Below the pieces are notes generated by a model. It did no database searches. It saw only the letters and a list, made by a program, of their open reading frames with translations, and was not told the DNA's origin. This document shows, piece by piece, positions 5,700 to 39,609 of a DNA stretch of 64,000 nucleotides. Both the position numbers and the translations under genes were made by a program. Position 1 is the first letter of the stretch. Each line of letters starts with the position of its first letter. The DNA comes from Dicyema japonicum (Eukaryota; Animalia; Dicyemida): NCBI GenBank assembly GCA_011109175.1, contig RDEW01000002.1, forward strand, positions 1,953,413-2,017,412, in the 5' to 3' direction.

Positions 5700-8660
5700 C
5701 TGGTTATTGTCAACGTCCAGTGTTTTTAGCCTTTATGGTTTTAATAATTATATTCGCCAGCCCCAACCGAGTTGTCATATAAAATTCATTTTCTTCGTCC
5801 TCAAGACAGCAATTAAAACTATTTTTAGGCCCTGTCTCCACAATTTGTCAAAGTGCTCGATTGCGGATAGCTTCAATAAGGAGGATCGTGAAATCTGCAT
5901 TGCCTACGAAGGACTTGCATACGTCATCATGGGTCGGATAAATTGTTCATAAATCATGGCAAGGCTACCAGTATGTCTCAGTATGTCACTTTTAAAATTC
6001 TCATTTTCCTCAGAGCAGAAGTTACTATGTTCTCAAGATAAAGGTGACTCCCAGAATCTTCGGTGTTTGTTAATAAAAATAGCCTCGTTCATCATAAAGA
6101 TTTTTGGTTCGACACAGAGCTGTCTTTGGTAAGTGGTAAACAGCGTGACAAAGGACTTTGTTGCTGATGCGTCGACTCTCCGCTTCGAGAGCCATAGTTC
6201 CAGCTTGTCAAGCATTTGTTGGACTGAGTCGCTGATTGAATGCTTCTGTCCTTGGAAGCAAGAATGATATCGTCGACATAGGAGAGGATTAGACAGTTTT
6301 CATTACAGGTTTGTGGCATGTCGTTTATGTAGAGATTGAAAAAAGATGTCGATGGTAGGGATCCTTGAGGGACTCCATTTGGTATGAGACGGGATTTTGA
6401 TTTTATGTTATTGCAAATCACTTGTCCACGTCTCCACTTGAGAAGTTGGCAATCCATAGTTTTATGTTTGGGTGGATGCATGTATCGTAAATTTTCTCAG
6501 TAAGGAGTTTTCTTGAGACTGTTTCGAGAGCCTTTGTTACATCAACAAAGACCAAGACTGTTCGTTGGTGTGGTTTAGTGAAATTGAATCCCTCCGCAAT
6601 AAACTGGCACAGGGACGTTAGGTATGTTGCAGTGGAGTGTTTAGCCTGGAATCCTTGTTGGAAGGGAGAGAGCGGGATGTAGTCTTTGATATTTATGAAC
6701 ATAGGATCGAGATTGGTCTGTAGGAAAAGGGGTCATTTTCGGATTTTCCTGGGGTCATCGGTTTGATTGATGATCTCTTCCAGACATACGGAATAGTGTT
6801 CATATTTATTGATATTGTGAAATGTAGCGATTAAATCTAAAGCAAGAGGTTCTAGATGCTTTAGTTTAGAAATATTTCTGGACCTCGGTCTTTGGAGTTT
6901 CGGGTTTTTGATATTCCCACTGGACGTCCTTCGCCGTAAATATGGTCCGCACGTATGATCCTTCGGTTTTATTCGTTTAAGAGTACTTGGTGTTCTTTGG
7001 AATGGTTTTATGTGCTATGGAAGCATAGTAATTCATTGAGGTGTTTGGTTTGCAATGATATCCCATTTTGCGGTTCATCAAAAGACCTTTTGATAGACTT
7101 GATTTTGTTCCAGACCTTCTGTACTGACGGATTTTCTGTTAGAGCTTTTGATAGTTCTGTCCAGCTTTTCTCGTTTTTTACTGATATATTTGTTAATCTC
7201 CTTGTTTAGTGTACGAATTCTTATTATATCTCCTTCGACGGTATGTTCTTTTTCTTTAGTTTCTTTCTTTGACTAAATGTTTGGCTGTTGAATTGAATCG
7301 CCTGTTCGTCGGTTGTCTTCCCATTTTCTAGCTTCTTGACTGAGCGAAGAGAACTGCTTTATGATGTTGTTTAATGATGATGCAGCATGTAGTTTTGATG
7401 ACTTGATCTGCATGTCAATACTGACGGATTTTCTTTTAGGGCTTTTGATAGTTCTGTCCAGCTTGCAAATCTTTGCCAGTCGCCTGTTCGTCGGATGTCT
7501 TCCCATTTTCTAGCTTCTTGACTGAGCGAAGAGAACTGCTTTATGATGTTGTTTACTGATGAGGCAGCATGTAGTTTTGATGACTTGATCTGCATGTCAA
7601 TACTGACGGATTTTCTTTTAGGGCTTTTGATTGTTCTGTCCAGCTTGCAAATCTTTGCCAGTCAGCGAGGTTATAATTTATCAAAGTAGGGAATGACCCT
7701 TAATTTGATCTTGTTTTTATTTGTAAAATGATCGGATTATGATCACTCATCGTTTCGTATTTCACTCTCCATGAAATTGAAGAAGCCGGAAGGGAAGACG
7801 CGATTGAAACGTCAGGAAATGATGGTCTAGCATTTTGTCTTGGGGGTTCTTGTGTGAAAATTAGGGTCGTTTAGGATGCAAAATGTTCCCAAGTATTCGA
7901 TTAGCATGTCTCCCCGTCTGATTGACGTCTGACCTCTCAACCAGAGCGGGTGTTTTGTATTTAGGTCACCGCAAAGAAGAACGTCCTTTAGTGAGCTGAT
8001 CGACGAAAGTTTCGGGCAAGTGGCTGATGATAAAAAATAGATATGAATTGATCAGAGTAAGACGTAACTTTGGGAGTTGGATTTTTGTGGCCAGAATAGA
8101 GCGGGTGTTTTGTATTTAGGTCACCGCAAAGAAGAACGTCCTTTAGTGAGCTGATCGACGAAAGTTTCGGGCAAGTGGCTGATGATAAAAAATAGATATG
8201 AATTGATCAGAGTAAGACGTAACTTTGGGAGTTGGATTTTTGTGGCCAGAATTTCGATACTTTTATGGTTTTGGAGACGGTTGTAGACGTATTTGGTGAT
8301 ATCTTCATAAGGGATCCCGTTTTGTATGATAGTTAGTAACCCTCCCCCAAGTTTTCCACATCTATCTTTGGGGACAACTGAGTATCCAGGAAATTTTGGA
8401 ATTATGTTCGCACTTCTGAGTTTGGATTCTTGTAATAGAAGGACGTCAATTCTAGATTTTTCCATAATGTCTCTGACTTCGATGATCTTATATCTCATCC
8501 CGTGTATATTCATTTGCATGGTCTTTAAAGGTCCGGGGTTCGATTCGACGCCCCCACATAGAGACAGTCCGTCCTTGTAACCTAGGGCAGTGTAACTCTT
8601 TTCTTTAAAATGTCTCCAGTTTGGTGAGTTACGTGACATCCAACCAACCACAAAACACGG
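5700..8660 (-). mobile_element. Decayed APE-type LINE (Jockey/I-like) with endonuclease and RT
   Basis: APE motifs MQMNIHG, LLLQESKL, GGGLLTII (8121-8651); RT motifs FQQGFQAKHST, FVDVTKALETV, GVPQGS, SYVDDI (6092-6702). Confidence 0.85.
8529..8600 (-). other. 2A-like (StopGo) peptide directly upstream of the LINE APE domain
   Basis: In-frame GLSLCGGVESNPGP followed by LKTMQMNIHG; consensus is (D)VExNPGP, with G here in place of D. Confidence 0.7.
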
Positions 8661-8676
8661 CGTTTGTAGAGTCTTC

Positions 8677-10890
8677 TTTTATTATTATAGGCACGTACGC
8701 GATGCCAAGATCATGACAAAGCATGTGCAACACGAAAAGTTAACAATCTAATTAACGTCGCCCATCTTTTTCGATCCGTTGCCATGTTCCGTAGCATATC
8801 TAGATCGTCCCAATCTTTAAGGCACTTTCCAATCCTCTTGAGATCTTCATCTAGAATAACCGGCAGTGTTGTTCTCTGACGGCCTCGGAAACAAGAAGCT
8901 TCTAAGACAAAATACTCCTCCATTGCTATGTTGGCAGGGGTTCCCATATCGTGGCGGAGTATGTGTCCAAAGAGCCTCCATCTTGAATCAGTAATATCAC
9001 ATGATATTGGCTTAGTTCCTGTTCTCTTGTATAAGATTTCGGACGGCATTTTGAAAAAGCTTCGAGAAGAAAGGAGTGCTTGGAGATGATTTCTGTGAAA
9101 AAAATTCAACTTTTCGAGTTCCTGCCCTGTACATGCCCATGTACCGGCATTATATAATAGAATTGGGCTCACTAGGGCATTGTATAGTCTCATTCGAGTT
9201 TTAGGGTCAAGCCCTTTGTGCAGAAGCCAGGTCTCTTCATTTTGTTGAAAGCGACATTGGTTAGTGTCTTCCTTCGTGCTATATCTTGTGTCACCGAGTA
9301 GGGACCCTAGTTTTTTTGATCTACGCCAGTGCTCGTCGGTCCTTTCCTCACTTCTTTTTAGCTTTGTGATTTCGGTTTTGTTTGTGTTTACTTTTAATGA
9401 CCACTCAGCCATTTTATCAGGCATTTTCTCCAAAAGTGCAATTANTTTAGGGTCAAGCCCTTTGTGCAGAAGCCAGGTCTCTTCATTTTGTTGAAAGCGA
9501 CATTAGTTAGTGTCTTCCTTCGTGTTATATCTTCTGTGTCACCGAGAAGGGATCCTAGTTTTTTTGATCTACGCCAGTGCTTGTCGGTCCTTTCCTCACT
9601 TCTTTTTAGCTTCGTGATTTCGGTTTTGTTTGTGTTTACTTTTAATGACCACTCAGCCATTTTATCAGGCATTTTCTCCAAAAGTGCAATTAACTTTTTT
9701 TTGTTATTCGAAATAAAGTCCACGTCGTCCGCATATGCTATTGTTCCTTCTCTGATATGAGGCTTCAAGTCTCGTAGAGCTGCCTCCAGATAAATAATGA
9801 ACAAAATCGGGGATAATGGATCTCCTTGAGGGGTACCAATTGTCGTTTCAAATGTCCTCGATAAAGCTTTCCCAGTCCTGACCATCAAACTCGTGTCCGT
9901 CAAGAGTGTCTTTACCATCCTAATCGTTGAGCTTTCCAAGAAGTGCTCCAGTATTTGCAGCAGCTTGTTCCTGTTGACGGAATCAAAGGCCTTTGACATA
10001 TCAATCCCCAGAATGGTTGTCGTTATTTTAAATTTTTGAACAGTCGCACTTCTCCATTTGTGGCTCCATATAACATCTGACGTTGATCTCTTGCGGAAGC
10101 CACTTTGATAAGCCGACAGGTACGGGTCTAGGCGTCCCTCCATTCTTTGAAGCGTAATATTGGCTAGTATCTTCCGTAATGTGTTGGTTAATACCACTGG
10201 TCTTAGGTTCTCAACTTTCCCCGATTTTTTGTTTGGCTTCTGTACTGGTATCAATAGTCCTTCTCAAGTGGCTCCTTTACTATACATTTCGTTTAGAATC
10301 CAGGCAATTATCATGTATAGCTTTTGAGTTCCATATTTGAAAAATTCACCATTTAAGCCATCTGGGTTGGGACTCTTATTGTCCGTCAGTTTGAAACTTG
10401 CTGTCATCACTTCTTCCAAAGTTATTTCTTCGTCTAATTTTCCCTGATCCGTGTTAATGATGAGTTTTGTGCCATTTTTTGATACGAATTGTGCTTCAAA
10501 AAAATCCGCTATAAATTCTGCAATTTCTTGTTGGTTAGCAATATGTTTTCCTTTTTCATCTCGTAAAATCAGTGTTTTCCTTGGTAGTTTTCTGATTTGT
10601 CCGACAGCTTCATAAAACTTCGCATTGTCTTTAAGGCCTTCGATTTTCTCTATTTTTGTTATTGTTTCGTTCTTTAATATTCAACGTGCAGCTTTTCTTA
10701 TTTTCTTTTTGATGACTGTTCTTTCCTTTTGTAGCCGCTGTTTCGTATTTTTGTCATCTGTATTTAGACATTGTATCCATATCGCCTTTTGTTGATTTGC
10801 AAAGAGTTTCAAAGCGGTTGCTTCTTCAGTGGGTATTTTAGTTACGTAGTCCTCTTTCAGGTTACGTAGTCCTATATATCCGCAGCAATC
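8677..10890 (-). mobile_element. RTE-like LINE, 5' truncated and disrupted
   Basis: RT motifs LRPVVLTN, GIDMSKAFDS, PQGDPLSP, YADD, RWRLFGHILR; (TAA)n tail near 8680; in-frame stop near 10265 and a frameshift near 9480. Confidence 0.9.
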
Positions 10891-12432: not shown

Positions 12433-13800
12433 AAGGGGTCCTATGGCTAAGTGGAACATTTTACCAAGGTCCTCGACATCTTTAGCTAAAAAAGTCATCT
12501 TTTTTAATATTTTTATATAAGTTTAAAATGAAATATTTATTTTCAAAAGAAAAAAAGGAAAATGATTATAAATGTTAATAGAACACATATTCTACTAAAT
12601 TGAATATATATTCTGTCGGATCCATATTAAGTAATATTTGTTCTTGAACAAATCTCAATATATTCTCAGATAAAGCGATATATTTAGTTTTTCTAAGAAT
12701 TTTTTCTCCATTTTGTAATCTTAAGAATTTAATCATTATGCCTTCTTCTTTTATCAATTTCTTTACAAAATTTCTTGGCGTCTTGTTTAGTGTCCCAAAT
12801 GTATTTCTAAAAACGTTGTGCCAGCCTTCAATTGAGTTATTTGTCCGAGGTAAGTCCTCATATAAATTATCCAGATTATTCCAATAATTAATTGGAAATT
12901 TTGGAATTAATGCATTTTCTTGATTTCCAATATAATTGATCGAAAAATATAATGGATTTAGAATTTCAGGAAAATCTGATCTCGACACTATCCAATCAAA
13001 AGTGTTCTTTACAGTATGTGTAGGAATATAGGAGAGGCATTTCAACAGTTTTACAAATCTATCGTTAATTTTAAATCACATTTAACCTATTTATATCTTC
13101 ATTGTTTATGTCGTTGAAAATTCCTAGTTCCAATATTTTTTATTAATATTTTGTCCTAGATGGAACATGCAGCAATTTATCCGTGCGTTTGGAAATGATT
13201 TTTGAAAAGAGTTTATTGCTCCTTTTTCAAAATCTGAGACAATAACTCTTGGTTCTAAATCCGGAATGAGACGTTTAATTATTTGAAGCATTGTGTCATA
13301 TTCATTTTCAGTTTTTGATGTTAAAAGACAGAATATTATTGGAATTACATGGTGATTAATTATTACCGAGATTGTGAATAATTGCTTCCAAGGAAAAGGG
13401 CAGACAAAAAAAGTCCCATCAATAGACCATATTTTATGATTTTTTAATGGTGTCGTCATTTCAGAATTAAAAAAATACCCATATTTGGTGAAAAGTGTAC
13501 ATATTGATTTTTCAGCGAAAATAGTTAGTCGGTGGAAATATATTTTATATTTAGTCGGTGAAAATACATCAAAAGTGAACCCCGTCGACATTATCGACGT
13601 TGCGTTGCCTTTCACGATTGCAACAGAGATCGATTAGCAGTCAACCAATCATAGATGGTGTTCAATCTCATCTGGGCGTTAGAGGCTGCAATTTGCGTCG
13701 ATCGGTTCCGTATTGCAATTATTGAGTCGTCTGCGTACAATAATAAAAAATTCCGTGTTCTTAATTTGATAGATTGAAAGGGGAAAAAATTGAAAAAAGT
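12433..13800 (-). mobile_element. MULE (Mutator-like) transposon, near-complete transposase with a 28-nt intron
   Basis: WSIDGTF, VSDFEKGAINS, CMFHLGQ, PRTNNSIEGWHN motifs; one A-run frameshift near 13140; intron 13059-13086; GGGGTCC terminus-like sequence near 12433. Left boundary uncertain. Confidence 0.85.
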
Positions 13801-21004: not shown

Positions 21005-21436
21005 TCAGAAAGCCACACTTCATTTTCATTTCAAGCAACATAGTAAGAAAATGTCTGCCTTAATCAAGAAACAACCTCCCGATGGGACTCAGTTCGGTGT
21101 CGCTGGGGTATATCCTCACATCAAGATCGCCATTAGCACTTCCGCTTGTGCGATATTTTCGAGAAATGGGTCTGTCCAGACGCAGCCAGCACTAGATGAT
21201 CATGAATATTGAGGACCTTGCTTGCATATGAGTTTACGAAGTTGAGACCAAAGTAGTGGGTCTCGTACTCGCCGAGGGTGTTATTAATTACGCCAAGAAT
21301 CTCAGATCCGGTCGTTGTCCTCTAACAGATAGTAATAGATTACTACATTCACGAAAAACGCTTTGACAATTTATTGGGGAATCACACGTGGACTGGCAAA
21401 GGTGGCGGATCTATTCGAGAATTGATGGTGGCTCAT
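21005..21436 (-). pseudogene. FERM-domain gene pseudogene (5' part only)
   Basis: Near-identical to 35490-35920 but has a +1 frameshift near codon 12 and is truncated at about 21005. Confidence 0.85.
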
Positions 21437-22072
21437 TTGGTTATCAGGCAGTCAACAATAATAAACATCGATCGCCATCTATTCTATGACACCATAAGAA
21501 TTAACTACGATCGAGTTGTTTGAATTTGTAGCTATTCTCGCAGAATAAAAATAACTAAATAATTCCATTAATTGCCGCATGCAGCATGAATTGTCCATAA
21601 ATGTCGTATATTTGATTAAAGTCGAAGATAGATTTTGTCTTTTATATCTTTTCCGGTTTATCACACAATTTTAAGCAATCCATGTCTTAGTGATGTGAAC
21701 GATCACTGCCTTTAAATAATCAACAGTTATGACACGTGGGAAAGTATACTTTTGGTTCAGTGTTACGATTAATTATTTCTTTTATCGATGACTCGTCTAG
21801 ATTGTTAGCTCTACACAAAAGAAATCGTTTTAAATTCAGGCGAACGACACGATGAACCTCAATAATATTGGAGTGGATTATGAATGTCTCAATTCTGCTC
21901 ATGACGATAATTTATAGTTAATTGGAGCGACTAGTAACTCTCAATTTTAAAATTCCCGTTTAATAAGACAGTGACACTTAACAAAAATTAAAATGAAATA
22001 CATAAAGTCCAAAAGACCTCGGTAGCCCTAAATTAACTAAACAGGTGATCCCGGAAAGATCTGAAAGAGACT

Positions 22073-23173
22073 TCACACAAAGGAGACAACAACTGCAGTA
22101 ATGTCGTCTCTGTAGCTCCGAGATATCCCACGTGGAATTGATAAAAGTTTTTCAAACATCGAGTTATCTTTTAGATTCCCACGAAGAGCAGTTTCAAAAA
22201 GCTTAGTGACTACATTAGGAGAACAACCACCAAATTGTGAAATATGCGATCCAACAATTTCAGCCACGTGTTCATTATCCAAAAAATCAAGAATTCCTTT
22301 GGTTCCCATAACAACACAAATATCCTCAGGCCTGATTGAGTGAGACATAACTTCTGGGTTAGATTTGAGGTATGGGGGAGACTTGTATAATTCAGGAAGC
22401 ATAATATTTCCCTCCATGCCTTTAGAAGTCATAAATTTCTTCACCCCAGAGAGGTATTCACGAGTCCACTTGAACTGGAAGTTTCCGAATGCTCGAAGAG
22501 GCATAGATATTCCACACAGTCCACCATTAACAAAGATTTCTTTTTTTTCTTCCTCAGGGACCGAGTTTTTAATTCTTTCGACTTCGTTTAAATTCTCGAA
22601 AGTATGAGGATTAGTGAGTTTAACTGCTTTGAATTTCCCATTATCAGCAGAAACAACGAATGCGGAACAATCCCCCATATTAGCGACATAAATGGTCCCA
22701 TCAGTGATGTATGCAAGGCAGGTAGATGCTCCGGAAAGAGCTGTCAAGAGAGACTGGTGGATTATTCAAAAAAGTGACCTCAATATTTGGTTGAGAAGAA
22801 TATTCAAGGCTGATTTTTTTATCGAAGAATGTGAACCCCGACGAAATCGACTCCGCTATAGTTGAGGTTAATTTTGAATTAGTCGAATCAAGATGGGAGA
22901 TCTACTTTTTTTACTCATATTTACATTAATTGGTCTGTAAATGAAGGAGCCAATTACGTATGGTAGAAACTTTGAGCAAAATCTACCACAATGATGTCCT
23001 CCAAAACCGTCAACAACGCCAATGAAAAATTCATATTTATTGCAAATCTTTTTTTTGACGATAAAGTCTTCACATATAGTATTGGACAGAAGCTGATTTG
23101 ATATAATGGATTTGACAAAAGGAGAGAAACATCTAATAATTTGCTCGTTCTCTGTTAAGAGTTTCAAACTCAT
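22073..23173 (-). CDS. PP2C-family, pyruvate dehydrogenase phosphatase-like protein, copy 1 (350 aa, probable pseudophosphatase)
   Basis: Introns 22902-22924 (23 nt) and 22754-22778 (25 nt) give an open frame; PDP-like motifs SNQL..N..ED, GVVDG, ANMGDC, MPLRAFG, PPYL..PEV, SRSYRDDIT. Confidence 0.9.
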
Positions 23174-23639
23174 TAAAATTCATAATTTATTTAAATTATT
23201 ATTATTAGGGCAACCAACTAATTTAAATTTCTTTTTAATAAAAATTCATAAAGATATTTATAGATTTGCATTTAATGATTATTTCAGTTATATTATTTTA
23301 AATAAGATTTCAATTTTAATCCATTTTTAAGCCATTGTTATTTACATTTATTCTCAATTATAAAATTTAATAAAATAAATTTTTAGTAAAAAAAGTACAG
23401 ATATCATAGTTGTTCAAGGATGTTAGGTCACGTTCACAGAAAGCTCATTATTACCCTAGAAATATTCGGAGTTTTGTTTTGAACTTAGATAAAAAACTTT
23501 TCTTTTGGAAATGTTCGATTGTCTTTATCTGTTATAAAATTTTTTTTGTAGATACACATTTTAAAACTGCGAATCATTTAAAGGAAAATGTATGATTTCT
23601 ATTTTCATTTCACAATTCATTTAAAAAATGAACGATATT

Positions 23640-24170
23640 TATCTCAGATAATCCCAGCGATCGAGTTAGTTGGTCTTTGAAGGTTACCAAAGCTTTCATC
23701 CATGAGGTACTCTTTCCGTCACGTCTTTTTGAAGAGGGCATTTTGAACTACCTTCTGAAACGAAAACCAGGATTATGTTAAACAGATTTCTGCCAAAAAC
23801 TAATTAAATTGTTTTCTATTTGAGCTTCCTAGCAAATTGTAATTGTTGACAATATGTTTTTTGCACATTAATGAGAGACTCACAAATGAAAGAAGATACA
23901 TAACTTCTTTAATTAGAAATGTTAAACATTCTAAATGAATAAATTTTGCGAATTGTAGAGAAATCGACTCTGCTTCTACTGCATCATCAATTTGTGTTGA
24001 AATTGATAAAGTTATGAAGGAGATTCTACGATATAATTTACGTTCTTTGATTACTGATTCGGCAGGATATATGACTTTTCACGTTAAGTGTATTTCATAT
24101 TTGCTACAAAATTGTGTATTTAAGATAAGATTTTATGTTGGATTAATTTCACCGACTAAAAGAAACTAAA
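23640..24170 (+). mobile_element. Decayed hAT-like transposase remnant
   Basis: LITDSAGYM...HVKCISYLLQNCVFKIR resembles the hAT SDxAxYM...HxxCxAHxLxNC block. Confidence 0.5.
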
Positions 24171-24407
24171 TGTGAAAATCTTCTTGTTGACTCTAGAGAG
24201 GTTGCATCGACTGTGGAATGTGTAACAGTTTTGTTAATTGTTTTTGTATTATTTTATTTAAAAAATCTCTCATATACGAATTTCCATATCATTAGTTTAC
24301 TATAGTTGCATTTGTTACCTAAAAGCTTTCAATCATTGGGATAAATAACACTTCGCAAATTCAATCAGATTAAAGCCGAAAGAGACTCAATCTGCAACTT
24401 TTTAATT

Positions 24408-26370
24408 ATATCGACCTGTCCTTAAATTACTTCTAGCCACCTCAGTATCTCCTATGTCTTTTTTAATCTTGTTCTGCTTAAGTTTTGCAAATTTTCAATT
24501 AGAGTGGAAAAAATTTAAAATCGACATGTTAGATATATTTTACTTGTCTTGTTGAATTTTTTATTTTAAAAACCAAAGTTTGGATTATAAGTTCATTTAT
24601 TTTGGTGTTTTCTGACAAAATAGTTGACCTCATTTTAAATTAAAGTTACTCAGAAGATGTTTTATCTAATCTTAAATTTTTTCAGTTCACTTAAGGTCTC
24701 TACTATTTTCGCATGAGAATGTCACAGTGGTTCGGTAAAGTTCATTTTTCAACCATTCGCCTTGTAAACATCAAAACTCATATGAAAAAGATCACTGAAC
24801 CTCTGAACCGGATAGGATCGCTTATCGCAACAATGACAACAAACAAGAAGTTAATAGCTGACTAATCGAGTGCATTTCCTTAAAGATTGAATAAAGGAAT
24901 TTGATTCTAACTATTTGGTTCTATTAATTAATTTTCTCATTTCTTTTAATTTTAGACAATTAGCTAAATGCAATCACTTTACGCGGAAAGCATTCAACAT
25001 CTAGCCTTCTATCAATTTAACTGACTACATTGCAGATGGATCCAACAATCATAAACCTCTACTTCAAATTTTTCTTGCCTCCATTGATAATTCAAAGGCC
25101 TTAGACCAGTCCTTCGTCACGTTATTTGCAACAAGATAAACGCAACGATTATCCCTCCATTTTACACAGATGGCTAAATTCATTACTCTCTGGTTGAATG
25201 GGACGTTCCTTAATAATGTTAGAAATATCTAGTTCAGTTAAGAAGTGTATTTCTCTGCCGTTCACGAAAGCCCCCAGTTTAATTTTGATTTAAAAATTCT
25301 CCATAATGAGCTTATATGTTATCATCATATCCATACGGAGAATATGATTAGAGTCGAGAGCAACATTTATCACTTTGAATCTTATCGGTCACATTTACCT
25401 AACTCATAAAGAGTCTTGTCTAATTTCTGCGACCAGTGAATTCCTAATATATTTTTCTGCCAATTTCTGTGATATCCAATAATATTTTTGGATGAGATTA
25501 AAAAAATCGGTCAAATGAACCAACGTCTCTTCCTAAATCAAGATTATTACTGATTCCAGTCAATCTTCTTCATTTTAAAGAATTAAAATTCAGGAAAATA
25601 TTGTTATGAAATGATTAAATAGATCCGTTACATCAAGATTATTACTGATTCCAGTCAATCTTCTTCATTTTAAAGAATTAGAATTCAGGAAAATATTGTT
25701 ATGAAATGAATAAATGGATCCGTTACAAATACTTACCAGAAAGTCAATTAGAGATTTTGAGAAAGGAGATCAACATCCGTGCAGTCAGTAGCCGCATATT
25801 GAAATGTTCAACAGATCAAAGATGGATAGATTTATCAAGAGCTTTTGACTCGATTACAGAAATAAATTAATGTAAGTGTTTTCTCGGCCGTTATTATGAC
25901 CAGCTTCTGGCAGACACACTTGACTCAGCTATCAGGGTTTCGTGTATTTGCATAAAAATACGCTCATTTAGTAGGACTACTCCATACAGTTTTCGACCGA
26001 ATTAATCATGGTGTAGTAGGTTTTTATCTGCGTACTCCGCGGATCATAACGTCAATCTCATCATTTTTTGGGCTCAAACACCACACACCTATGTAGTAGA
26101 TGTTACTTGATTGAAGATTTCTCCTACTTCCATCTGGTAGCGTAATCGCATCTACTTTACTTAGGAGACGCCAAATACTTAGCAGGCATTCAAAAGATCC
26201 ATTTAGACTATTTGGCTACCTAACGATGAGTTCTGGTATCGATCTTAACTTCACTGACAATGAACCGTGGACCACTTGTATTAGGATAAGGGATCTACTG
26301 AATGTGTCAAGATCTCGGGATTAGTTATTTTGATTTTATGGAATTAATCTTAGTTCAGGTATTTTACGAT
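24408..26370. repeat. Right arm of the roughly 2-kb inverted duplication
   Basis: Reverse complement of 18685-20757 with scattered substitutions and indels. Confidence 0.9.
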
Positions 26371-26518
26371 GTAAAACATGTAGAATTGGTTTAGTGGAGT
26401 TCCACGAAAAGAAGTTTTACGTCCATATCAATTTATGTCATCAAAATAAAAATCAGTACTGTGGATAATTCAGTGTTTTCTGAGCAAAATGGTATAATTT
26501 ATTGTAAAACCGTTAATA

Positions 26519-27725
26519 CAGTCGAACCCCGGGGTGGGGCATCAAAGTGCCCCAAAAAGCGGGGGTGCCCCATGGCGGGGGTTTTGTTGTGTTTTTCGGA
26601 AGAAAAAACAATTTAACATTTGAGTATTCCAATAAATAATGGCATGTAGCATTATCCATTATTAAAAGTATTTTTCTATCTTGTGAGAGAAAGTCGTCGT
26701 TAATCTTTGAAAGCCACATTTTGAAAATTTCTCTATTCATCCAGGAATTTTTTGACGCTGCATATAAAATACCGAATTTTTCACAATCAAAATCTATGTT
26801 AAAATATAATTAAGCAAACTTTTCATACAACGTGGTGATTTGTATTTTCCAATAACAAGGGGTCTTAATTTATTTCCTGCTGCATTACAGCAAAGGAGAA
26901 CTGTTACTCTTTCTTTACTGAATTTTGTACCATGACATGTTTCTATAGATTCGACATAAGATCTTGAAGGAAATTTTTTAACATACAATGATGTTTCATC
27001 ACAGTTAAAAATATTTTCATGACCATAAGTTTTCAACAAATTATCGAATTGAAAAAAAAAATTTGCCAAATTACTTTTATCTGCTGAATTTTTTTCACCA
27101 CAAATGGCTTTAAAAACCAGATCATGTCTCTTTTTAAATCTGTCTAACCAACCGTTTGAGGCTTTAAAAGATGTTGAATAATTCAATTTTGTCGATATTT
27201 TTTTCGCGATGGCTTTGATTAAAGTACCCGAAATAGAAAAGGAATCATCCCTCAAACGACGAAAAGCATTAAAAGTTAATTCGTCAAGTTTTTCAAATTG
27301 ATTGACTTCATTAGAAACTGGTTTAACTTCATCTATTTGAACTAATCTTGAAATGACTGATCCCGTATTAATGAAAGAAGAAATGTTTTTTTTGATTCGG
27401 GAAATAGTGCCTTTGCTTATCTTGAATTTTTTTGCAACTTCTCTTTCAGAAGAAGTTTGTAGACACTTTGCAATTTTAATTTTTGTTTCAATAGAAATTT
27501 TGGAAGGCATTACACAAAGACAATTATCACGTGTTCAAAAATAATATTATTCAAAATAATATTATGTATTAAAATATTAAAATAAATTAATAAAGTGCCC
27601 CATACTGGGGTTTTAATAATTTCCAAATTTGGAAATTATTAATGGAAAATGTACTAGAAAATAAAATCGCCCCAAAAAGCGAGGGTGCCCCATGGCGGGG
27701 GTTTTATTGGGGCGGGGTTCGACTG
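26519..27725 (-). mobile_element. pogo/Tigger element, internally deleted, TIRs and TA TSD intact
   Basis: TA|CAGTCGAACCCCG ... CGGGGTTCGACTG|TA; ORF from 27510 with HTH, FKASNGWLDRFKKRH, NCDET, KERVTVLLCCN; 26-nt intron 26794-26819; truncated after LPKNTT. Confidence 0.93.
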
Positions 27726-28141
27726 TATTTTGAAATAATAAAATTAAAAAAGTCCTCTCAAATGAGTCGAATGGAACTTTAATGATTTTTATTACTTTAA
27801 ATTAACAAAAAATTTCATTAATATTTAAAATTAAAAAAAATATTTTATTTCGGAAATCAGTTTTTTCCTTAGTGAATTATATTTAACGAATTAAACTATT
27901 TTTATTTAAAAAAAACTGATTGTTATAGTAAAAATTATCAATTATCTTATTGTAATGCTTGTTGATATACAACATTGCTTGTACGACCGTCCGTTGTGAA
28001 TATGAATAGGTTTTCTCGTTCACCTACTCTAGAACAACCTACATATAACTGTCCATGTGCAAAACATTTAAAGATAAACCTACTACTTTAAGAGTTTGTA
28101 CCTGTGATTTGATGATTGTCATTGCGAAACTTAATTTCAAN

Positions 28142-28620
28142 AGTTTTTTCCTTAGTGAATTATATTTAACGAATTAAACTATTTTTATTTAAAAAACTGA
28201 TTGTTATAGTAAAAATTATCAATTATCTTAATGTAATGCTTGTTGATATACAACATTGCTTGTACGACCGTCCTTTTTGAATATGAATAGGTTTTCTCGT
28301 TCACCTTTTCTAGAACAACCTACATATAACTGTCCATGTGAAAAACATTCACTTGCTAAAGATAAACCTACTACTTTAAGAGTTTGTACCTTTGATTTGA
28401 TGATTGTCATTGCGAAACTTAATTTCAATGGAAATTGTAGTCGCTTAAATCTAAATGGTATTTCATCTGAAAATTAATTCAACGGCAGTCGGTTTTATCT
28501 GACCAAATCCACTGCTTAAGATTACATTATAAAAACTCTTCCACCGAGGAATGAAGTGACATCCGCGAAGCTAATACGAGTGATTTTATTTATTTATTAA
28601 ATGATAAAAATAAAAGAACG
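28142..28620 (-). mobile_element. Helitron helicase (PIF1-like) C-terminal fragment
   Basis: [25 protein letters not shown]...[13 protein letters not shown]...NVVY. Confidence 0.85.
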
Positions 28621-28719
28621 TTACTTCACCCTTCTTCATTTTTAAAAAATAATAAACATATTATTTTTTTATAATTTGTGAAATATTATAAATTACAATT
28701 GATTAAATTCAATGCTATT

Positions 28720-28920
28720 TTCTCATCCATATACATGCTCCTCTGTTCCTAGCAAAGGTTCTCATAGTGTCAAGGTCGTCGGCAGTTTCTAAATTTCTTT
28801 TAATATTGACCAGGTTTTTTTGTAAAACTATTGGCAGTGTTGTTCTAGGTCTTCCACGATAGCGGCCTTCTTGACTAAAATAGTATGTTTCTATAGATCT
28901 GTTCGGTAGGGATGTTAGCT
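28720..28920 (-). mobile_element. RTE-like LINE 3' fragment
   Basis: GRYRGRPRTTLP...DDLDTMR; reverse-complement match to 37620-37850. Confidence 0.75.
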
Positions 28921-29504
28921 CTATCCTCAGGACGTGAACTCTTCAGTAGTTTTTATAGTAATTTTATTAGGCATCAGGACACCTTGATGTGGGTTAGTTT
29001 TTTGATTTTATTTTCAAAAATTATGGTATGCTACAAAAATTGGTTAAATCTTTTATAAAATATTTTTATTCATGATAATAATTATTATTATTACCTAAGA
29101 TTAATCTCTATTAGTAAAAATAATGATTTTACATAAAAATGCACAAATTATTCAGAAACTTAAGTATTGAATAATTTTCAACGAGAAGGGTTATGGTTAA
29201 GACAAAAGATTGGAATAGCCATACTCCAAGGGAACTCGTTCGCATTCCACGCAACAGGCTTCCTCAACTGACATTTGTTTAATTGTTAAAAAAAATTATT
29301 TTAAAAATAAATAAATAAATAATTTTCAATTAACATGATAGGTGTTGACACCTGTCAATCATCACTATCAGCGATCGAGACATAATATAACTGAAATAAT
29401 CATTAAATGCATATCTATCAATATATTTATGAATTTTTATTAAAAAGCAATTTTTATCAGCTGGTTGCCCTAATAATAATAATTTAAATAAATTATGAAT
29501 TTTA

Positions 29505-30605
29505 ATGAGGTTAAAACTCCTAACAGAGAACGAGCAAATTATCAGATGTTTCTCTCCTTTTGTCAAATCTATTATATCAAATCAGCTTCCGTCCAATACT
29601 ATATGTGAAGACTTTATCGTCAAAAATAAGATCCCCACTAAAGATGAATTCATCATTGGCGTAGTTGACGGTTACGGAGGACATTACTGTGGTAGATTAT
29701 GCTCGCAGTTACTACCCTCCTTAACTAGCTCCTTCATCTACAAACCAATTGATGTAAATATGACTAAAACTGTAGATCTTCCATTCTGATTCGATTAAGT
29801 CAAAATTTACCCCAAATATAGCGAAGAGGATGTCGTCTGGGTTCACATACCTAGATGATACCATCAGCCATGAATTTTCTTCTCAACCAAATATTGAGGT
29901 CACACTCTTTGATTTATCAATTAGTCTCTCATGACAGCTATTTCCGGAGCATGTGCCTGCCTTGCATACATCGCTGAAGGGAAGATATATGTCGCTAATA
30001 CTGGGGATTGTTCCGCATTCGTTGTTTCTGCAGATAATGGGAAATTCAAGGCAGTTAAACTCAGTAATCCCCATACTTTTGAAAATTCGAACGAAGTCGA
30101 GAAAATTAAAAACTCGGTCCCTGACGAAGAAAGGAAAGAAATATTTGTTAATGGTGGACTTTGTGGTATATCTATGCCTCTTCGAGCATTCGGAAATTTC
30201 CAGTTCAAGTGGCCTCGTGAATACCTCGCTGAGGTGAAGAAATTTATGACTTTTAAAGGCATGGAGGGAAATATTATGCTTCCTGAATTATACAAGTCTC
30301 CCCCATACCTCAAATCTAACCCAGAAGTTATGTCTCATTTAATCAAGCCTGAGGATATTTGTATTGTTATGGCAACCAAAGGAATATTTGATTTTTTGGA
30401 TAATGAACACGTGGCTGAAATTGTTGGATCGCATATTTCACAATTTGGTGGTTATTCTCCTAATGTCGTTACTAAACTTTTTGAAACTGCTCTTCGTGGG
30501 AATCTCAAAGACGACTCGATGATTGAAAAGCTTTTATCACTTCCACGTGGGATTTCTCGGAGCTACAGAGACGACATGACTGCAGTTGTTGTCTCCTTTG
30601 TGTGA
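29505..30605 (+). CDS. PDP-like PP2C protein, copy 2 (350 aa, probable pseudophosphatase)
   Basis: Introns 29754-29775 (22 nt) and 29899-29924 (26 nt) give an open frame; same motifs as copy 1. Confidence 0.9.
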
Positions 30606-31245
30606 AGTTTCTTTCGGATCTTGCCGGGATCACCTGTTTAGTTAATTTGGGGTTACCGTGGTCTTTTAGATTTTTTTATTTCATTTTAATATTTTCTAAG
30701 TGTCACTGTCTTTTTAAACGGGCATATTAAAATTGGGAGTTATTAGTCTTTCCAATTAACTATAAATTGAGTTTATGAGCAGTATTGAGACATTCATCGT
30801 CGACTCCAATGTTCTGGAGAGTCATCGTGTCGTTTCCCTGAACTTTTAAACGATTTCGTTTGAACTAGGTCGAACTCTCTAGACGAGTTCATCGATGAAA
30901 GATGCAATTAATCGTAACACTGAACCAATTTAATACTCTCCCATGTGTCATAACTGTTGATTAATTAAGGGCAATGATCGATCACATCACTAAGACGTGT
31001 TTTTGCTTAAAATGGTGTGATAAACCGGAAAAGTAATAACAGACGAAATCAATCCAAGACGTTAATCATATGTACAACATTAATGCGACAATTCATACTG
31101 CATGCGGCAATTAATGGACTTATTTAGTTATTCTTATTCTGCGAGAATAGCTCCAAAAACAAACAATTCGATTGTAGTTAATTTCCATGGCGTCGTAGAA
31201 TTAATAACGTTTGATATTTATTATTGTTGGTCTCCTGACAAACAA

Positions 31246-31495
31246 ATGAGCCGCCATCAATTCTCAAAGAGTTCCGCCACCCTTGTCAGTCCACGTGTGA
31301 TTCCCCAATATCTAGTCAAAACGTTTTCCGTGATTTTATTCATCTAGTACTAACTTTTAGAGGACAACGACAGGAGCTAAGAATTCTTGGTTCGTGTGAA
31401 CGAGAGACACTATTTTGATCTCAACTTCGTAAACTCTTATGGAAACAAGGTCCTCAATATTCATGATAACCTAGTGTTGGTTGCTTCTGAAGAAA
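31246..31495 (+). pseudogene. FERM-domain gene pseudogene (short 5' remnant)
   Basis: Homologous to 35490-35750; same +1 frameshift as 21005-21436, plus deletions. Confidence 0.8.
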
Positions 31496-31774
31496 TTCAT
31501 TCTGTGAATTTCGCTAAACTAATGCAAATTACACTTTGTCCTATAAACTGAAATTATACTTTGTCTCTTTAGATAATTCGCAGTTTTAAGATGTGTATCA
31601 ACTGCAAATTTATTATTACAGTTCATCGAACATTTCGAGGAGAATAATTCTTTATCCAAGTTCACAACAAATTCCGAGTATTTCTAAGGTAAAAATGTGC
31701 TTTCAGTGATCTTGACCTTATATCCATCAAATAACTATGATATAAGTACTTTTTTATTAAAATTGTTGTCAATG

Positions 31775-33110
31775 TCCGTACGTGCAATTCCGCCGTACGG
31801 AACTCCACTAGAACCAATCAAAATAAAACTTAGTTCACTGGATAATTCAGATTTTTCTTAGTTTAATGTTTTAATTTTTACTTAAAATCGTTAGTATTCT
31901 AAAAACATAAATAAATGTAAATAAATAAATAAAAAACATAAAGTGGCAAAAAACCAGTCAATGTGAATAGAGTGTCACTTTAATGATATTTTATTATACT
32001 TAATTAACAAAAAATTTTATTAATATCTAAAAAATAAAAAAAAAATTATTTGATATCTTGACATGTTTTTAAGCTTCGAGCTGAAGATGGATGAGTTGCG
32101 TCGGATAATTGAATATCTCGATGCGTCGCTCTAAAGAAAGACTAAACAGCACATTTGGAGACTAGGCCCATTGCTAGTTTTCGAGGACGATATAGTCAAC
32201 TATAGAGTAATTTGATTATAATAGAATTAGGGCAACAATTTATTTCAGCAATTTTTTTGCGAAGAAGCAAAAGTGAAACAACAATTGGTAGTATTTTTGC
32301 CTGTTGATCATTAGAGTGAACACAATTTTGCACATATGGGAGGAGAGGAGATTGTTTATTGTTGAAAAAAGATCTACAATTTAACTCGTATAGAAGTTGC
32401 AGATACAGTAGAGAAATGTGTCTACTGTCAAACCAAAAGACTTACTGTAACTAGGCCTCCAATTACTGCTATCATTGCGGAATATCCGCGTGATAGGTTA
32501 TGTAATGGTTGATTCTTTTTCGAAATTTGTTATGGTCTGTAGGGCTAATATTGAACAGTTGAAGAAATGTCTCAGATTTTTCAGAAATTTTTTTACACAA
32601 GGACCACCTACTATATTTCAAATATACAATTGTTTGGTGTTTTGTAACAGGTTAAATGTTAAACATATTTTTGGGCGACCAAGAGCACCGTGGGTTCAAG
32701 GCCAGGTAGAGAGGTATCATTTATATAATTTTGTATAGATAAAGTCAATCTCGTAAAAAATGGTTATCATGCGTTTGTTCTACTGATGGAACTCTTGGAA
32801 AATATCAATCCTTTCTGGGAGATATTGTATTCAGTTACGATCTTACCAATCACGAGACCACCAAGCAAGCTACTTCAAAATTTTTAATGAAATGGATTAT
32901 CCGCCACAAACATCTGATAAACGCTTACTACAGTGTGAAGAAGATGAAGACCTATCTTTGTTACGGGATTCTGCACAAAAGTATACTTTGGTAGCTGCAG
33001 AAAAAATGCGAAAGAAAAGAAAATGAGAAAATGAAGAATCGTTGAATGTAGGAGACAAAGTAATTCTACGAATGGACTGTGACTACAATCAAACAACGAA
33101 AAAAAGCGCT
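31775..33110 (+). mobile_element. Ginger/GIN-like (rve integrase) DNA transposon remnant
   Basis: PITAIIAEYPRDR, MVDSFSKF, QGPPTIFQ, HIFGRPRAPWVQGQVER; terminal region shared with 42899-43150 and 26380-26515. Confidence 0.65.
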
Positions 33111-33397
33111 TGGGATGAATAGGGTCAGGATTTGGGATTAAGGTTAGGGTTTAAGTTTTATGTTTGAGTTGGAGTTTTAACGGTATGGAACTTATTTTAG
33201 TTGGTAAGGGAAAGGGCTAAGAAAAGAATAATTTTTTAATATTAAAAGTTAATTTTCGCTTAGTTTTTTATTTATTTTATAATAAATTTTCCTACATTAA
33301 TTGTAGTGAATTGTTTCAGGTTGTTATAACATCATATTTTACATGAATAATTAAAACCAGAAATCGAATGGATTTGAAAAAGATAGTATATTTTTTA

Positions 33398-33542
33398 ATA
33401 GCCTTTTCACGAGAGTCATAATATCTATAGCTCCACATAGGCAGGACACACACTTTATTAAAGTAAATAACAGTTAATTTTTACTAATCGTAGAACCAAG
33501 GAATGATCTTCACTTTTTTTTCTTTTTCTTGTATGTGGGTCC
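33398..33542 (-). mobile_element. SINE 3' half (5' truncated)
   Basis: GCCTTTTCACGAGAGTCATA...CGTAGAACCAAGGAATGATCTTCAC matches SINE copies A and B; lies about 120 nt upstream of PDP-like copy 3. Confidence 0.85.
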
Positions 33543-33664
33543 TTAATAATTATAATTATTATTATATCTATCAAAATCTAAAATTTTATGAATTTTTATT
33601 AAAAAGTATTTTATATCAGTTGGTTGTCCTAATAATAATTAATTTAAATAAATTATGAATTTTA

Positions 33665-34762
33665 ATGAGTTTAAAGCTTTTAACAGAGAACGAGCAGATT
33701 ATCAGATGTTTCTCTCCTTTTGTCAAATCCATTATTTCAAATCAGCTTCCGTCCAATACTATATGTGAAGACTTTATCATCCAAACTAAGATCCTCAATA
33801 GAAATGATTTTATTATTGGCGTTGTTGACGGTTACGGAGGACATCACTGTGGTGGATATTGCACACGTTTACTACCCGGCATAACTAGCAACTTTATTTA
33901 CGAACCAATTGATGTAAATATGCCTAAAACTTTAGATCTATTCTAAGTCGACTAATTCAACATTAACCTTAAGTATAGAAAAGTCGATCTTGTCGGGGTT
34001 CATAGTCTTAGATAACATGATCAGCCAAGATTATTATTCCCAACCGAATATTGAGGTCACCCTATTTGAGTTATCCATCAGTCTCTCTTGACAGCTCTTT
34101 CCGGAGCATCTACCTGCCTTGCATACATCACTGAAGGGACCATTTATGTCGCTAATATGGGGGATTGTTCCGCATTCGTTGTTTCTGCTGATAATGGGAA
34201 ATTCAAACCAGTTAAACTCACTAATCCCCATACTTTCGAGAATTCGAACGAAGTCGAGAGAATTAAAAACTCGGTCCCTGAGGAAGAAAAGAAAGAAATC
34301 TTTGTTAATGGTGGACTTTGTGGTATATCTATGCCTCTTCGAGCATTCGGAAATTTCCAGTTCAAGTGGCCTTATGAATACCTCGCTGAGGTGAAAGACT
34401 TTATGATTTCTAATGGCATGGAAGGAAATATTATGCTTCCTGAATTATACAAATCTCCCCCATACCTCAACGCTTACCCAGAAGTTATGTCTCATTCAAT
34501 CAGGCCTGAGGATATTTGTATTGTTATGGTAACCAAAGGAATTATTGATTTTTTGGATAATGAACACGTGGCTGAAATTGTTGGATCGCATATTTCACAA
34601 TTTGGTGGTTGTTCTCCTAATGTAGTTACTAAGCTTTTTGAAACTGCTCTTCGTGGGAATCTCAAAGATAACTCGATGCTTGAAAAACTTTTATCAATTC
34701 CACGTGGGATATCTCGGAGCTACAGAGACGACATGACTGCAGTTGTTGTCTCCTTTGTGTGA
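33665..34762 (+). CDS. PDP-like PP2C protein, copy 3 (349 aa, probable pseudophosphatase)
   Basis: Introns 33914-33935 (22 nt) and 34056-34081 (26 nt) give an open frame. Confidence 0.9.
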
Positions 34763-35489: not shown

Positions 35490-36556
35490 ATGAGCCGCCA
35501 TCAATACTCAAAAAGTTCCGCTCCCTTGGCAGTCCACGTGCGATTCCCGAATAATGAAGTCAAGTCGTTTTCCGTAAATGTAGTCATCTAGTACTATCTG
35601 TTAGAGGACAACGACCGGAGCTGAGATTCTTGGCGTAATTAATAACACCCTCGGCGAGTACGAGACCCACTACTTTGGTCTCAACTTCGTAAACTCCTAT
35701 GGAAGCAAGGTCCTCAATATTCATGATCATCTAGTGCTGGCTGCGTCTGGACAGACCCATTTCTCGGGAATGTCGCACAAACGGAAATGCTAATGTCGAT
35801 TTTGATGTGAGGATATACCCCAGCGACACCGAACTGAGTCCCACCGGGAGGTTGTTTCTTGATTAAGGCAGACACTTTCTTACTATGTTGCTTAAAAGGA
35901 AAATGAAGTGTGGCTTTCTGACAAAGGACAGGCTCTTACTAACACTCTTGGCAGCTCTCCTAATAAAGGGTACTATCTTGCAATGAGGTTTAGTGGAATT
36001 CTCGGAGGACGAGTTTTGCGGGCTAACTCGCATACCAGTCTACTTTCCCCAACAGGGAGAGCTGGACTACCAAATAATCAATTCGCTGTATTCCGATTTA
36101 CAGTATTGCGTTTTCATAACATTTAGTGGGGTCACTAGAGAAGAGGCTCAGAGTAGATTTCTGAGATTATGCAGTCTCACCGACTCATATGATTGTGAAT
36201 TCTACCCGGCCAATGTAAGATTATCCATTTACGCAAGAATTGTGACTTTAAGAACGTGATGTTGTCTGTAAACCACCGAGGAATCAAAGTGGTCAACAAA
36301 ACTGACCTTCTACGGTATTTTATGTGGGATTCCGTCAGAAAGCTGACATTTGACGGAAAATCACTTACAATAAAAATGATCGTCAGTCCTGTAAAGTGAA
36401 TTGAATAATTTAAAGAAGTTTAACATGAACTTTATATTTCCGACAAAATCCTGCTGTAAAATATTTTGGCGACTCTGCGTGGACTATCACGCATTCTATG
36501 TTAGTTGGTGTGATGATGAAAGCGAGGATGAAAGTTTCACAATTAGCTTTAAATGA
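35490..36556 (+). CDS. FERM-domain-only protein (band 4.1-like), about 299 aa
   Basis: Seven introns (25,25,21,24,24,23,25 nt) leave 900 nt. FERM-N (HYFGLNF, CWLRLDRPI, FDVRIYP), FERM-M (GVTREEAQSRFL), FERM-C (WDSVRKLTF, CKIFWRLCVDYHAFY). Confidence 0.88.
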
Positions 36557-37149
36557 CATTATGTTTTAAATTTAATATTAAATTACTTTTTAATAATTCG
36601 ATGTTTTACTATATATCTGATCAACCCTCTTCAGGGTTTTTATCAAAAGTTTACTATGTGCTCCGCCAGACTCGTCCTCACCTTTGTCGGTCTGGGATCA
36701 CTTAGTTAGATGAGAACTTTTATTTCTTTCTCTTTGACCCAGTGATCCTGGGGGTNATTACTTTTTAATAATTCGATATTTTACTATATATCTGATCAAC
36801 CCTCTTCAGGGTTTTTATCAAAAGTTTACTATGTGCCCCGCCAGACTCGTCCTCACCTTTGTCGGTCTGGGATCACTTAGTTAGATGAGAACTTTTATTT
36901 CTTTCTCTTTGACCCAGTGATCCTGGGGGTAATAATAATAATAATGGCAAATACTCCGGACTAAGGTTGGGAGGCTACCTAAAGAATTTGAGACGCCTGA
37001 CGACCGTTTTCCCCTTATGGTGGTGGTGGCATAATACTAACATATGAGATTTCTACACGAAACCATCATTTTTGGAGGAGCCTTGGAGACGAAGAAAGAA
37101 GTGACCTAACCCCAGATTACCAGTAGTCTTCGATATGCGTAAAATCATA

Positions 37150-38192: not shown

Positions 38193-39609
38193 ATGGATGA
38201 CCTAGGCAAGTCTCAATCAAGAAAAGATATTATAACAGACTTGATGCTTCCACTGATGAGTAATAGTCCCGAGTCCACGGTTACAATTGATGCCTTTTCT
38301 ATTATTACTGACCAGTGCTATCTACTACTCATGGAAATCATCTCAGTGACCCTTTAATTCTAAACTTTAGAACGCCAAGTGCTACAAATACAAGATCAAG
38401 GATCACAAACTCAGACTAGACCACGTGGTGTCTGCTTTGACTGAGTCTTCCTTCTTCTACCCGGGATCTTGCTTAATTTCGAGAAACGAGACCGTGATTC
38501 GCAAGAAAGACATATTTCTTGAGCCCAAAATTCACTTGGATGGACAAATCAAGGGTCACTGGCTAGTAATAGAGGGGGTTCAACCAATCACGGCTTTAAA
38601 TCCTGTGGACTCCATCAGGAAGGAGGCCATGGAGGCTGCCCTACTCCAACAACCCCCAACCAAGCGACCAAAGTGCATATGTGACTCCAAGACTATGAGG
38701 ACAATAAACAGCCTTACAGCCTACAAGATAAAACCGACTGACTCCCACATAATAACAGCCGTATTTCTGGGGGTTGAAGTATAGGAGGAACAGCTCTTCT
38801 TTGTCGAGTTGACGAAGACGCTGGTGGGTGTTAACGACAGCAAAAGAATGGATTCCCTCAGTAGCCTAAGCAACGATCCCGTGGTCTCCTCCATCATGGC
38901 CCCTCTCGTAGTATTCATATCCCAGGCGGTTTGTCGCTCTCCTTTATTTAGACTCGGGAGAACATATCCACGTGCAACTTTCCGATTCTAATTTACATTA
39001 TCAGAGTGATACACGCTGTTGTGAGGAACCCCCACATTTATGTGGAGCAATATGTAGTGGTAGTGTATATTAGAGCTGCATGAACTGCTCCCCTGTGTCC
39101 TTAGTTGCATTGTCACCAAGGAAGTTTGCTCTGCGAGAGACTTTGGCAGTCAGTGGGCGTTGAGAGACTTTGCTGTGAACACTCTAAGGATGATTGTGAG
39201 GTAGTTGGGTGGTTATTGCAGGGGATTTGACTCTGAGGTTAACCAGATGAAGAATAGAGTGTGCAGGGTATTGGAGAAGGTATTGAAAAACCCAAAGTCT
39301 TCGATCCCTGCGTGTTATGGGGCGACTCATGGGCTCTTAGCACTTGGACATGATGCTGTAGACAAGTATTTGATGCCACACGTGGGTTCGGTAGTTGACA
39401 GGATCTGTGAAGTGGCAGACTCAGCTTACCCGGATAGTGCGGACAGAGTGGCTGGGGATAAATATGTGGATTTCCTGAAGAAGACGATGTCGGATGAGAT
39501 TATGCAGAATGTGAGTAAGGAGGGGGAATCTGAGTATTTGAAGAAGTTGGGGCGGATTGGACCCGTTGTTGCTGCATTCATAAGGGAAAGAACTTACATC
39601 GTTAGATGA
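38193..39609 (+). CDS. TAF6: Transcription initiation factor TFIID subunit 6, about 433 aa
   Basis: Introns 38346-38370, 38761-38784, 38929-38951, 39054-39075, 39201-39221. Motifs KGHWLVIEGVQP, EEQLFFVELT, YVEQYLHELLPCVLSCIV, QWALRDFA, CYGATHGLLALG. Confidence 0.92.

Follow-up and report, generated by a model that had tools for sequence, protein, structure and literature searches.

A 64-kb window of the Dicyema japonicum genome (contig RDEW01000002.1 of assembly GCA_011109175.1, positions 1,953,413 to 2,017,412) contains three paralogous genes, here called c1, c2 and c3, for short PDP-like proteins of the PP2C (PPM) phosphatase family in which several catalytic residues are replaced. With a probability of roughly 0.6, their sequences point to a short PDP-like PP2C gene that was triplicated within one species or lineage and whose products would act as non-catalytic binders or regulators, that is, as pseudophosphatases. 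The argument draws on the substitutions common to all three copies, on a canonical gene at the same locus in a contig that looks dicyemid, and on open frames that are maintained by purifying selection.

Catalytic residues of the three paralogs

In the list of open reading frames (ORFs) of the standard genetic code, each copy appears as an ORF of 93-101 amino acids (aa) followed by one of 224 aa, and a six-frame reading finds the middle coding piece in another frame. Removal of two GT-AG introns of 22-26 nt from each gene gives uninterrupted coding sequences (CDSs) of 350, 350 and 349 aa for c1, c2 and c3 (Table 1), which bears out the three intact paralogs proposed in the preliminary description of the locus. 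In a three-way DNA alignment the 1-nt, frame-breaking indels are confined to the two predicted introns, the sole exonic indel is of 3 nt, and the GT donor and AG acceptor dinucleotides are invariant; the summed intron length is 48 nt in every copy (23+25 in c1, 22+26 in c2 and c3). A ciliate or other alternative genetic code was considered for the apparent in-frame stops and ruled out, because the stops sit in GT..AG segments bearing the frame-breaking indels and none interrupts an exon read in the standard code. The copies share 81-84% protein identity and about 90% CDS nucleotide identity in pairwise comparison. No further copy was found by tblastn within the window, and no record of an encoding contig was found for the ATG-started exon-3 ORF of c2.

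The products belong to the PP2C fold family. Exon 3 of each copy matches the Pfam PP2C profile (PF00481; cut-off 20.3 bits) with E values of 1e-23 to 1e-22, and the best solved relative is PDP1 (PDB 3mq3/2pnq; E 5e-35). Alignment with PDP1 places VVMGTKGILDF opposite LVLATDGLWET and RAFGNFQFKW opposite RAFGDVKFKW, and both MAFFT and hmmalign put the catalytic residues in the same positions. Exon 1 alone gives a weak PDP1 match (E 0.1) together with chance matches to inhibin, and the N-terminal motifs were mapped through the full-length MAFFT alignment.

Three catalytic positions are altered in all copies: the Asp of (S/T)DG is Lys, encoded by AAA; the Asp of RAFGD is Asn; and the His of DGH is Phe in c1 and Tyr in c2 and c3. 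The ED, DG, GDC and RDD residues and the second Asp of DGxxD are retained in all three. The (S/T)DG Asp is the equivalent of D239 in PP2C-alpha, where it ligates the metal M1 and contributes to M3, and the general-acid pair of PP2C-alpha is formed by the DGH His and the RAFGD Asp. The change from Asp (GAY) to Lys (AAA) takes two nucleotide steps. The substituted motifs, the retained ED, DG, GDC and RDD residues, the PDP-like character of the proteins and the placement of Lys on the metal-ligand Asp had all been proposed beforehand; every alignment agrees with them, and the positions given for the AAA codons are exact.

The conservation of these positions was tabulated over the best 150 of 1126 matches from an exhaustive HMMER scan of 1.84 billion representative proteins. 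Among these relatives, the TDG position is Asp in 145/145 aligned, the RAFGD position is Asp in 145 and Asn in 5, and the DGH position is His in 49/50 aligned. The named proteins among the best matches are PDP1 of a crinoid, a lamprey, other animals and a fungus.

The PPM catalytic motif has been defined as DGH...DG...DN/D, and substitutions within it serve as the criterion for a pseudophosphatase (PMC13216928). In c1-c3 the substitutions fall in two of these three elements, in addition to the change from RAFGD to RAFGN, so that the three predicted proteins qualify as pseudophosphatases by published usage, in line with their earlier classing. With regard to the features of a competent PPM enzyme, DGH and the (S/T)DG Asp are lost, and the C-terminal DN/DD Asp and the GDS/GDC Asp are present.

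A canonical counterpart and the origin of the triplicate

The protein nearest to c1-c3 is XP_029655282.1, a partial RefSeq model of 173 aa (47% identity) filed as Octopus sinensis. The PP2C gene that it represents in part is found at 9336-10522 of contig VCDQ01002019.1 (295 kb; here L001), which belongs to assembly GCA_006345805.1 and is filed under the same species. This gene has three exons separated by introns of 24 and 26 nt, and its spliced product, of 378 aa and 44-46% identical to c1-c3, has fully canonical motifs: DGHGG, GDC, RAFGD, TDG and RDD. The 24-nt intron (L001 9639-9662), whose length is a multiple of three, holds an in-frame TAG. In common with c1-c3, the L001 gene has a short three-exon layout with nano-introns, the C-terminus RYRDDMTAVVVSFV, and FERM-like and TAF6-like genes downstream; unlike them, it keeps DGHGG, RAFGD and TDG, carries 12 extra basic N-terminal residues and is single-copy within the 20 kb seen. 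By tblastx the order PP2C, FERM-like, TAF6-like is common to L001 and the c3 locus, and the two neighbours have a protein identity of about 50-80% between L001 and the window.

Dicyemids and myxobolid myxozoans are the only animals reported to have such short introns (PMC13644364), and D. japonicum was collected from the kidneys of O. sinensis (PMC6854800). Because of the 24- and 26-nt introns and the gene order held in common with the window, we infer, short of proof, that L001 is what it looks like: a dicyemid contig inside an octopus assembly. A cephalopod source for the window itself, suggested by the filing of the nearest protein under Octopus, was rejected on these two grounds. No nucleotide-level repeats common to L001 and the window were found and the GC content also differs, which favours a different species rather than a paralogous segment of one genome. 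If L001 is dicyemid, XP_029655282.1 would be a mislabelled partial model of the 378-aa gene. A practical side finding is thus that both a contig and a partial RefSeq protein labelled Octopus sinensis look dicyemid-derived.

Since the syntenic L001 gene is canonical and the (S/T)DG Asp is present in every aligned relative, the three catalytic substitutions are derived. Because they are common to all three copies, either they arose before the triplication or gene conversion has carried them from copy to copy. Segmental duplication of about 2.1 kb gave rise to c1 and c2, each of which includes a truncated fragment from the 5' part of the FERM-like gene; c3 is therefore the parental copy, at the ancestral place. 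Compared with the adjoining 3' flank (p 0.18), the FERM-like fragment on the c1 side is visibly less diverged from the original beside c3, which suggests mosaic gene conversion.

Selection on the open frames and the weighing of readings

Comparison of c1-c3 by the Nei-Gojobori method, with limits from a codon bootstrap, gives whole-gene dN/dS (omega) values of 0.47-0.59 with upper 95% limits of 0.74-0.94; no more than 1% of bootstraps reach an omega of 1, and exon 3 has values of 0.32-0.53. The whole-gene dS of 0.15-0.18 matches the non-coding 3' flanks, which differ by 15-18%. In a substitution-only simulation, the probability that all three frames stay free of stops by chance is 1.4e-4 to 5.5e-3. 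Between c1 and c2 the 3' flank has 7 indels in 890 nt, and the CDS has none where about 8.3 would be expected (P 2.5e-4). Because omega, the survival of the ORFs and the absence of indels agree, it can be said that the open frames of c1-c3 are maintained by purifying selection, moderate in strength, as the preliminary description had supposed.

The N-terminal 37 residues and the C-terminal two-thirds of the protein, including the flap, are conserved, and the variable stretch covers about residues 38-125. The best-conserved part of the duplicated unit is the stretch of about 120 nt that precedes the start codon; it has diverged less than either the CDS or the 3' flank and is likely to comprise the promoter and the 5' untranslated region. 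All three copies have conserved an out-of-frame ATG 10 nt before the start codon (ATGAATTTTAATGAG), which could begin a short upstream ORF with a dampening effect on translation; alternatively, the actual 5' end could lie elsewhere.

If the copies are pseudophosphatases, the events preceding the triplication would have been the replacement of the M1/M3 ligand Asp of (S/T)DG by Lys, of the general-acid His of DGH by Tyr or Phe, and of its partner Asp of RAFGD by Asn, with the folded beta-sandwich, the strongly conserved flap region (FQFKW...PPYL) and the remaining acidic residues kept. The Lys side chain would pair with the aspartates of DG and RDD and so neutralise an acidic pocket that lacks M1, and a partner or phosphoprotein would be bound but left unhydrolysed by a protein that, like TAB1 and PHLPP, serves as trap, competitor or scaffold. 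TAB1 and PHLPP2 are PPM pseudophosphatases that keep the M2 metal only and are inactive, and all known PPMs require two or three metals (PMC12002173). Given this requirement and the loss of three catalytic residues, the products of c1-c3 are most likely catalytically dead. The metal-site Asp mutants PPM1A D146A and PPM1H D288A are substrate traps in which the substrate is recognised by the flap (PMC8567228); because such mutants still bind, and because the flap is well conserved in c1-c3, a non-catalytic binder is favoured.

Several observations weigh against this reading. Selection on the genes is moderate to weak overall: exons 1 and 2 together have dN/dS values of 0.58-0.69 with confidence limits reaching 1.1-1.4, which is indistinguishable from neutrality, and exon 2 by itself, at 0.9-2.4, lies at or above 1, although the excess over 1 is not significant. 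The other metal-site acids are all retained, so that residual or altered catalysis is conceivable, and some PPM proteins with degenerate motifs, Cyr1 for example, are reported to be active (PMC13216928). These last two points would fit enzymes that are still phosphatases or hydrolases with an altered site, for example with a single metal at M2 and the Lys as an electrostatic catalyst, or with changed substrate or metal needs; in particular, the retained acidic residues are invariant in c1-c3 and unchanged relative to the L001 gene. Such an outcome is unlikely, however, as the metal ligand, the general-acid His and its Asp partner were hit together, as no known PPM works with fewer than two metals and the M2-only TAB1 and PHLPP2 are inactive (PMC12002173), and as the position of the His is still drifting between Phe and Tyr, as would be expected once the site has become irrelevant.

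The high omega in general (about 0.5) and in exon 2 in particular (about 1 or more) would also suit young, non-functional duplicates that are decaying or were lately freed from selection, their open frames being a historical residue, and so would the surroundings rich in transposable elements, the truncated neighbour gene carried by the segmental duplicates c1 and c2, and the out-of-frame ATG upstream of the start codon. This is improbable: the silent and flanking divergence suffices to break neutral frames, the stop, indel and bootstrap tests all speak for constraint, and conservation extends to the splice sites and to the 120 nt before the start codon. The preliminary description also raised a host-directed effector, which the sequences do not support. 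A parasite lineage, tandem amplification and the hypervariable residues 38-125, with omega up to 2.4 in exon 2, are circumstantial hints of secreted proteins acting on cephalopod renal cells, since the latter two are common in effector families; but the N-terminus (MSLKLLTENEQIIRCF...) lacks the hydrophobic core of a signal peptide, only three copies are present, the exon 2 excess falls short of significance and the syntenic canonical gene resembles a housekeeping enzyme, which makes such a role very unlikely. It is hardly credible that the three copies are an assembly artefact of collapsed or expanded haplotypes. Public runs holding the region do contain just 45-56% of its sampled words, but the copies differ by 9-11% in their CDSs and 15-18% in their flanks, one of them is inverted, and different transposons and unique sequence lie between them.

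A bolder form of the pseudophosphatase reading, doubtful as it stands, is that the only PDP-type gene of this parasite was converted to a Lys-for-metal PP2C and then triplicated, with the Lys ammonium group placed permanently at M1. If this were true, the proteins would possess a metal-independent phosphate-binding pocket and be natural phosphoprotein readers or traps evolved from a phosphatase, the hypervariable residues would give each paralog its own partner, and the phospho-regulation of pyruvate dehydrogenase would be lost or rewired in this animal.

A published description of the D. japonicum genome gives a GC content of 36.7%, a repeat share of 49% in which LINEs are numerous, and introns averaging 38 bp (PMC6736024). 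The window is likewise repeat-rich, with 30-44% GC and LINE, pogo and MULE elements; these are listed in Table 1 with the parts of the three genes and their neighbours.

Table 1. Features of the window; positions are numbered from its first letter, and L001 denotes contig VCDQ01002019.1.
Feature	Position	Strand	Remarks
Paralog c1, 350 aa	22073-23173	minus	CDS after removal of two introns; Pfam PP2C E 9.5e-23
c1 exon 1; intron 1; exon 2	23173-22925; 22924-22902; 22901-22779	minus	intron 1 of 23 nt
c1 intron 2; exon 3	22778-22754; 22753-22073	minus	intron 2 of 25 nt; TGA stop
Paralog c2, 350 aa	29505-30605	plus	Pfam PP2C E 1.2e-23
c2 exon 1; intron 1; exon 2	29505-29753; 29754-29775; 29776-29898	plus	intron 1 of 22 nt
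c2 intron 2; exon 3	29899-29924; 29925-30605	plus	intron 2 of 26 nt
Paralog c3, 349 aa	33665-34762	plus	ancestral syntenic position (synteny with L001); Pfam PP2C E 2e-23
c3 exon 1; intron 1; exon 2	33665-33913; 33914-33935; 33936-34055	plus	intron 1 of 22 nt
c3 intron 2; exon 3	34056-34081; 34082-34762	plus	intron 2 of 26 nt
Lys codon (AAA) of TKG	22298-22300 (c1); 30378-30380 (c2); 34535-34537 (c3)	minus (c1); plus (c2, c3)	replaces Asp of (S/T)DG
Asn codon of RAFGN	22481-22483 (c1); 30195-30197 (c2); 34352-34354 (c3)	minus (c1)	replaces Asp of RAFGD
DGH His position, c1	23003-23005	minus	TTT, Phe of DGFGG
DGH His position, c2 and c3	29673-29675 (c2); 33833-33835 (c3)	plus	TAC, Tyr
Conserved upstream segment, about 120 nt	23174-23296 (c1); 29382-29504 (c2); 33564-33664 (c3)	minus (c1)	p 0.065-0.085
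Segment with upstream out-of-frame ATG	23175-23186; 29492-29503; 33652-33663	minus (first)
3' flank duplicated with c1	21005-22072	minus	ends in truncated FERM-like 5' part; c2 counterpart 30606-31514
Truncated FERM-like 5' fragments	21005-21324 (with c1); 31300-31514 (with c2)		full copy 35602-36505
FERM-like gene, downstream of c3	35602-36505	plus	FERM_C E 1.2e-4; syntenic with L001 10723-11630
TAF6-like gene	38554-39609	plus	TAF6_C E 2e-10; syntenic with L001 13047-14156
Pogo/Tc5-type transposase ORF between c1 and c2	26794-27510	minus	HTH_Tnp_Tc5 and start of DDE_1; truncated within DDE
LINE reverse transcriptase (RT) ORF, 660 aa	44298-46280	minus
Second RT and endonuclease-like remnant	8121-10254	minus
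MULE transposase fragment	13124-13615	minus
Two-unit tandem duplication, 177 nt	36582-36933		98% identity
Two-unit tandem duplication, about 285 nt	27859-28428		94% identity
Aldo-keto reductase gene exon	54751-55422	minus	Aldo_ket_red E 2e-41

Relation to known phosphatases and pseudophosphatases

In full-text literature searches neither a PDP-derived pseudophosphatase nor dicyemid PP2C genes turned up, in keeping with the earlier remark that no such family had been described, and PP2C and PDP go unmentioned in the papers on the dicyemid genome and on stage expression, supplements included. Motif-degenerate PPM proteins are known in several lineages (PMC13216928).

The closest known proteins by sequence are PDP1c and PDP2, which belong to the same PP2C fold family and have in common with c1-c3 the motifs SNQLxxN..ED, GDC/GDS, RAFGx.KFKW, PPYL..PEV and YRDDIT. 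The dicyemid proteins differ from them in the three substitutions (DGF/Y for DGH, RAFGN for RAFGD, TKG for TDG), in their length of 350 aa compared with about 470-540 aa, and in lacking the C-terminal insert. They start 27 residues before SNQL..ED, with acidic residues at positions 8 and 10, and the N-terminal part of the aligned PDPs is longer by about 90-130 residues; the mitochondrial presequence or N-terminal extension of PDP is thus absent, and the L001 product has no presequence region either. An unrecognised upstream exon may exist in c1-c3. Residues 98-151 of PDP1c form a surface pocket proposed to bind the lipoyl group of E2 (PMC12146199). This segment is missing from c1-c3, in which a gap of about 60-80 residues lies between DGxGG and the GxSGA strand, and is largely missing from the L001 product as well. 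Because the presequence region and the pocket segment are both missing, membership of a functional PDP family seems doubtful for c1-c3. Of the label PDP-like, the part that concerns ancestry stands, PDP1 being the top match, and the part that would concern function does not: it denotes descent, not a demonstrated role at the pyruvate dehydrogenase complex.

A second comparison is with TAB1 and PHLPP1/2, which have the PP2C fold, have lost the ligands of M1 and M3 and possibly retain the M2 site, as c1-c3 may do, and which are predicted or shown to be non-catalytic and to have scaffold or regulatory roles (PMC12002173). They are ancient, metazoan-wide proteins that do not derive from PDP and are multi-domain or bind TAK1, whereas c1-c3 are young, lineage-specific and triplicated. 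Pseudophosphatases with the PPM fold are few (TAB1, and PHLPP1/2 since 2025) and ancient; here one would be seen close to the moment of its birth. The presence of a canonical enzyme in one species and, at the same locus in a relative, of a constrained, putatively dead-site triplicate would constitute a natural experiment on the repurposing of a phosphatase, with a bearing on the control of energy metabolism in dicyemids, an extremely reduced animal lineage.

The engineered traps PPM1A D146A and PPM1H D288A provide the model for a natural protein with an Asp-to-Lys change: removal of one metal-site Asp abolishes turnover and keeps flap-mediated substrate binding. These laboratory mutations affect an M3 ligand, the equivalent of the GDC Asp that c1-c3 retain, whereas in c1-c3 a natural change affects the M1/M3 ligand and the general-acid pair is lost as well. 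The Asp-to-Lys replacement at a metal ligand offers in addition a testable structural idea, in which the cation of a side chain would take the place of M1.

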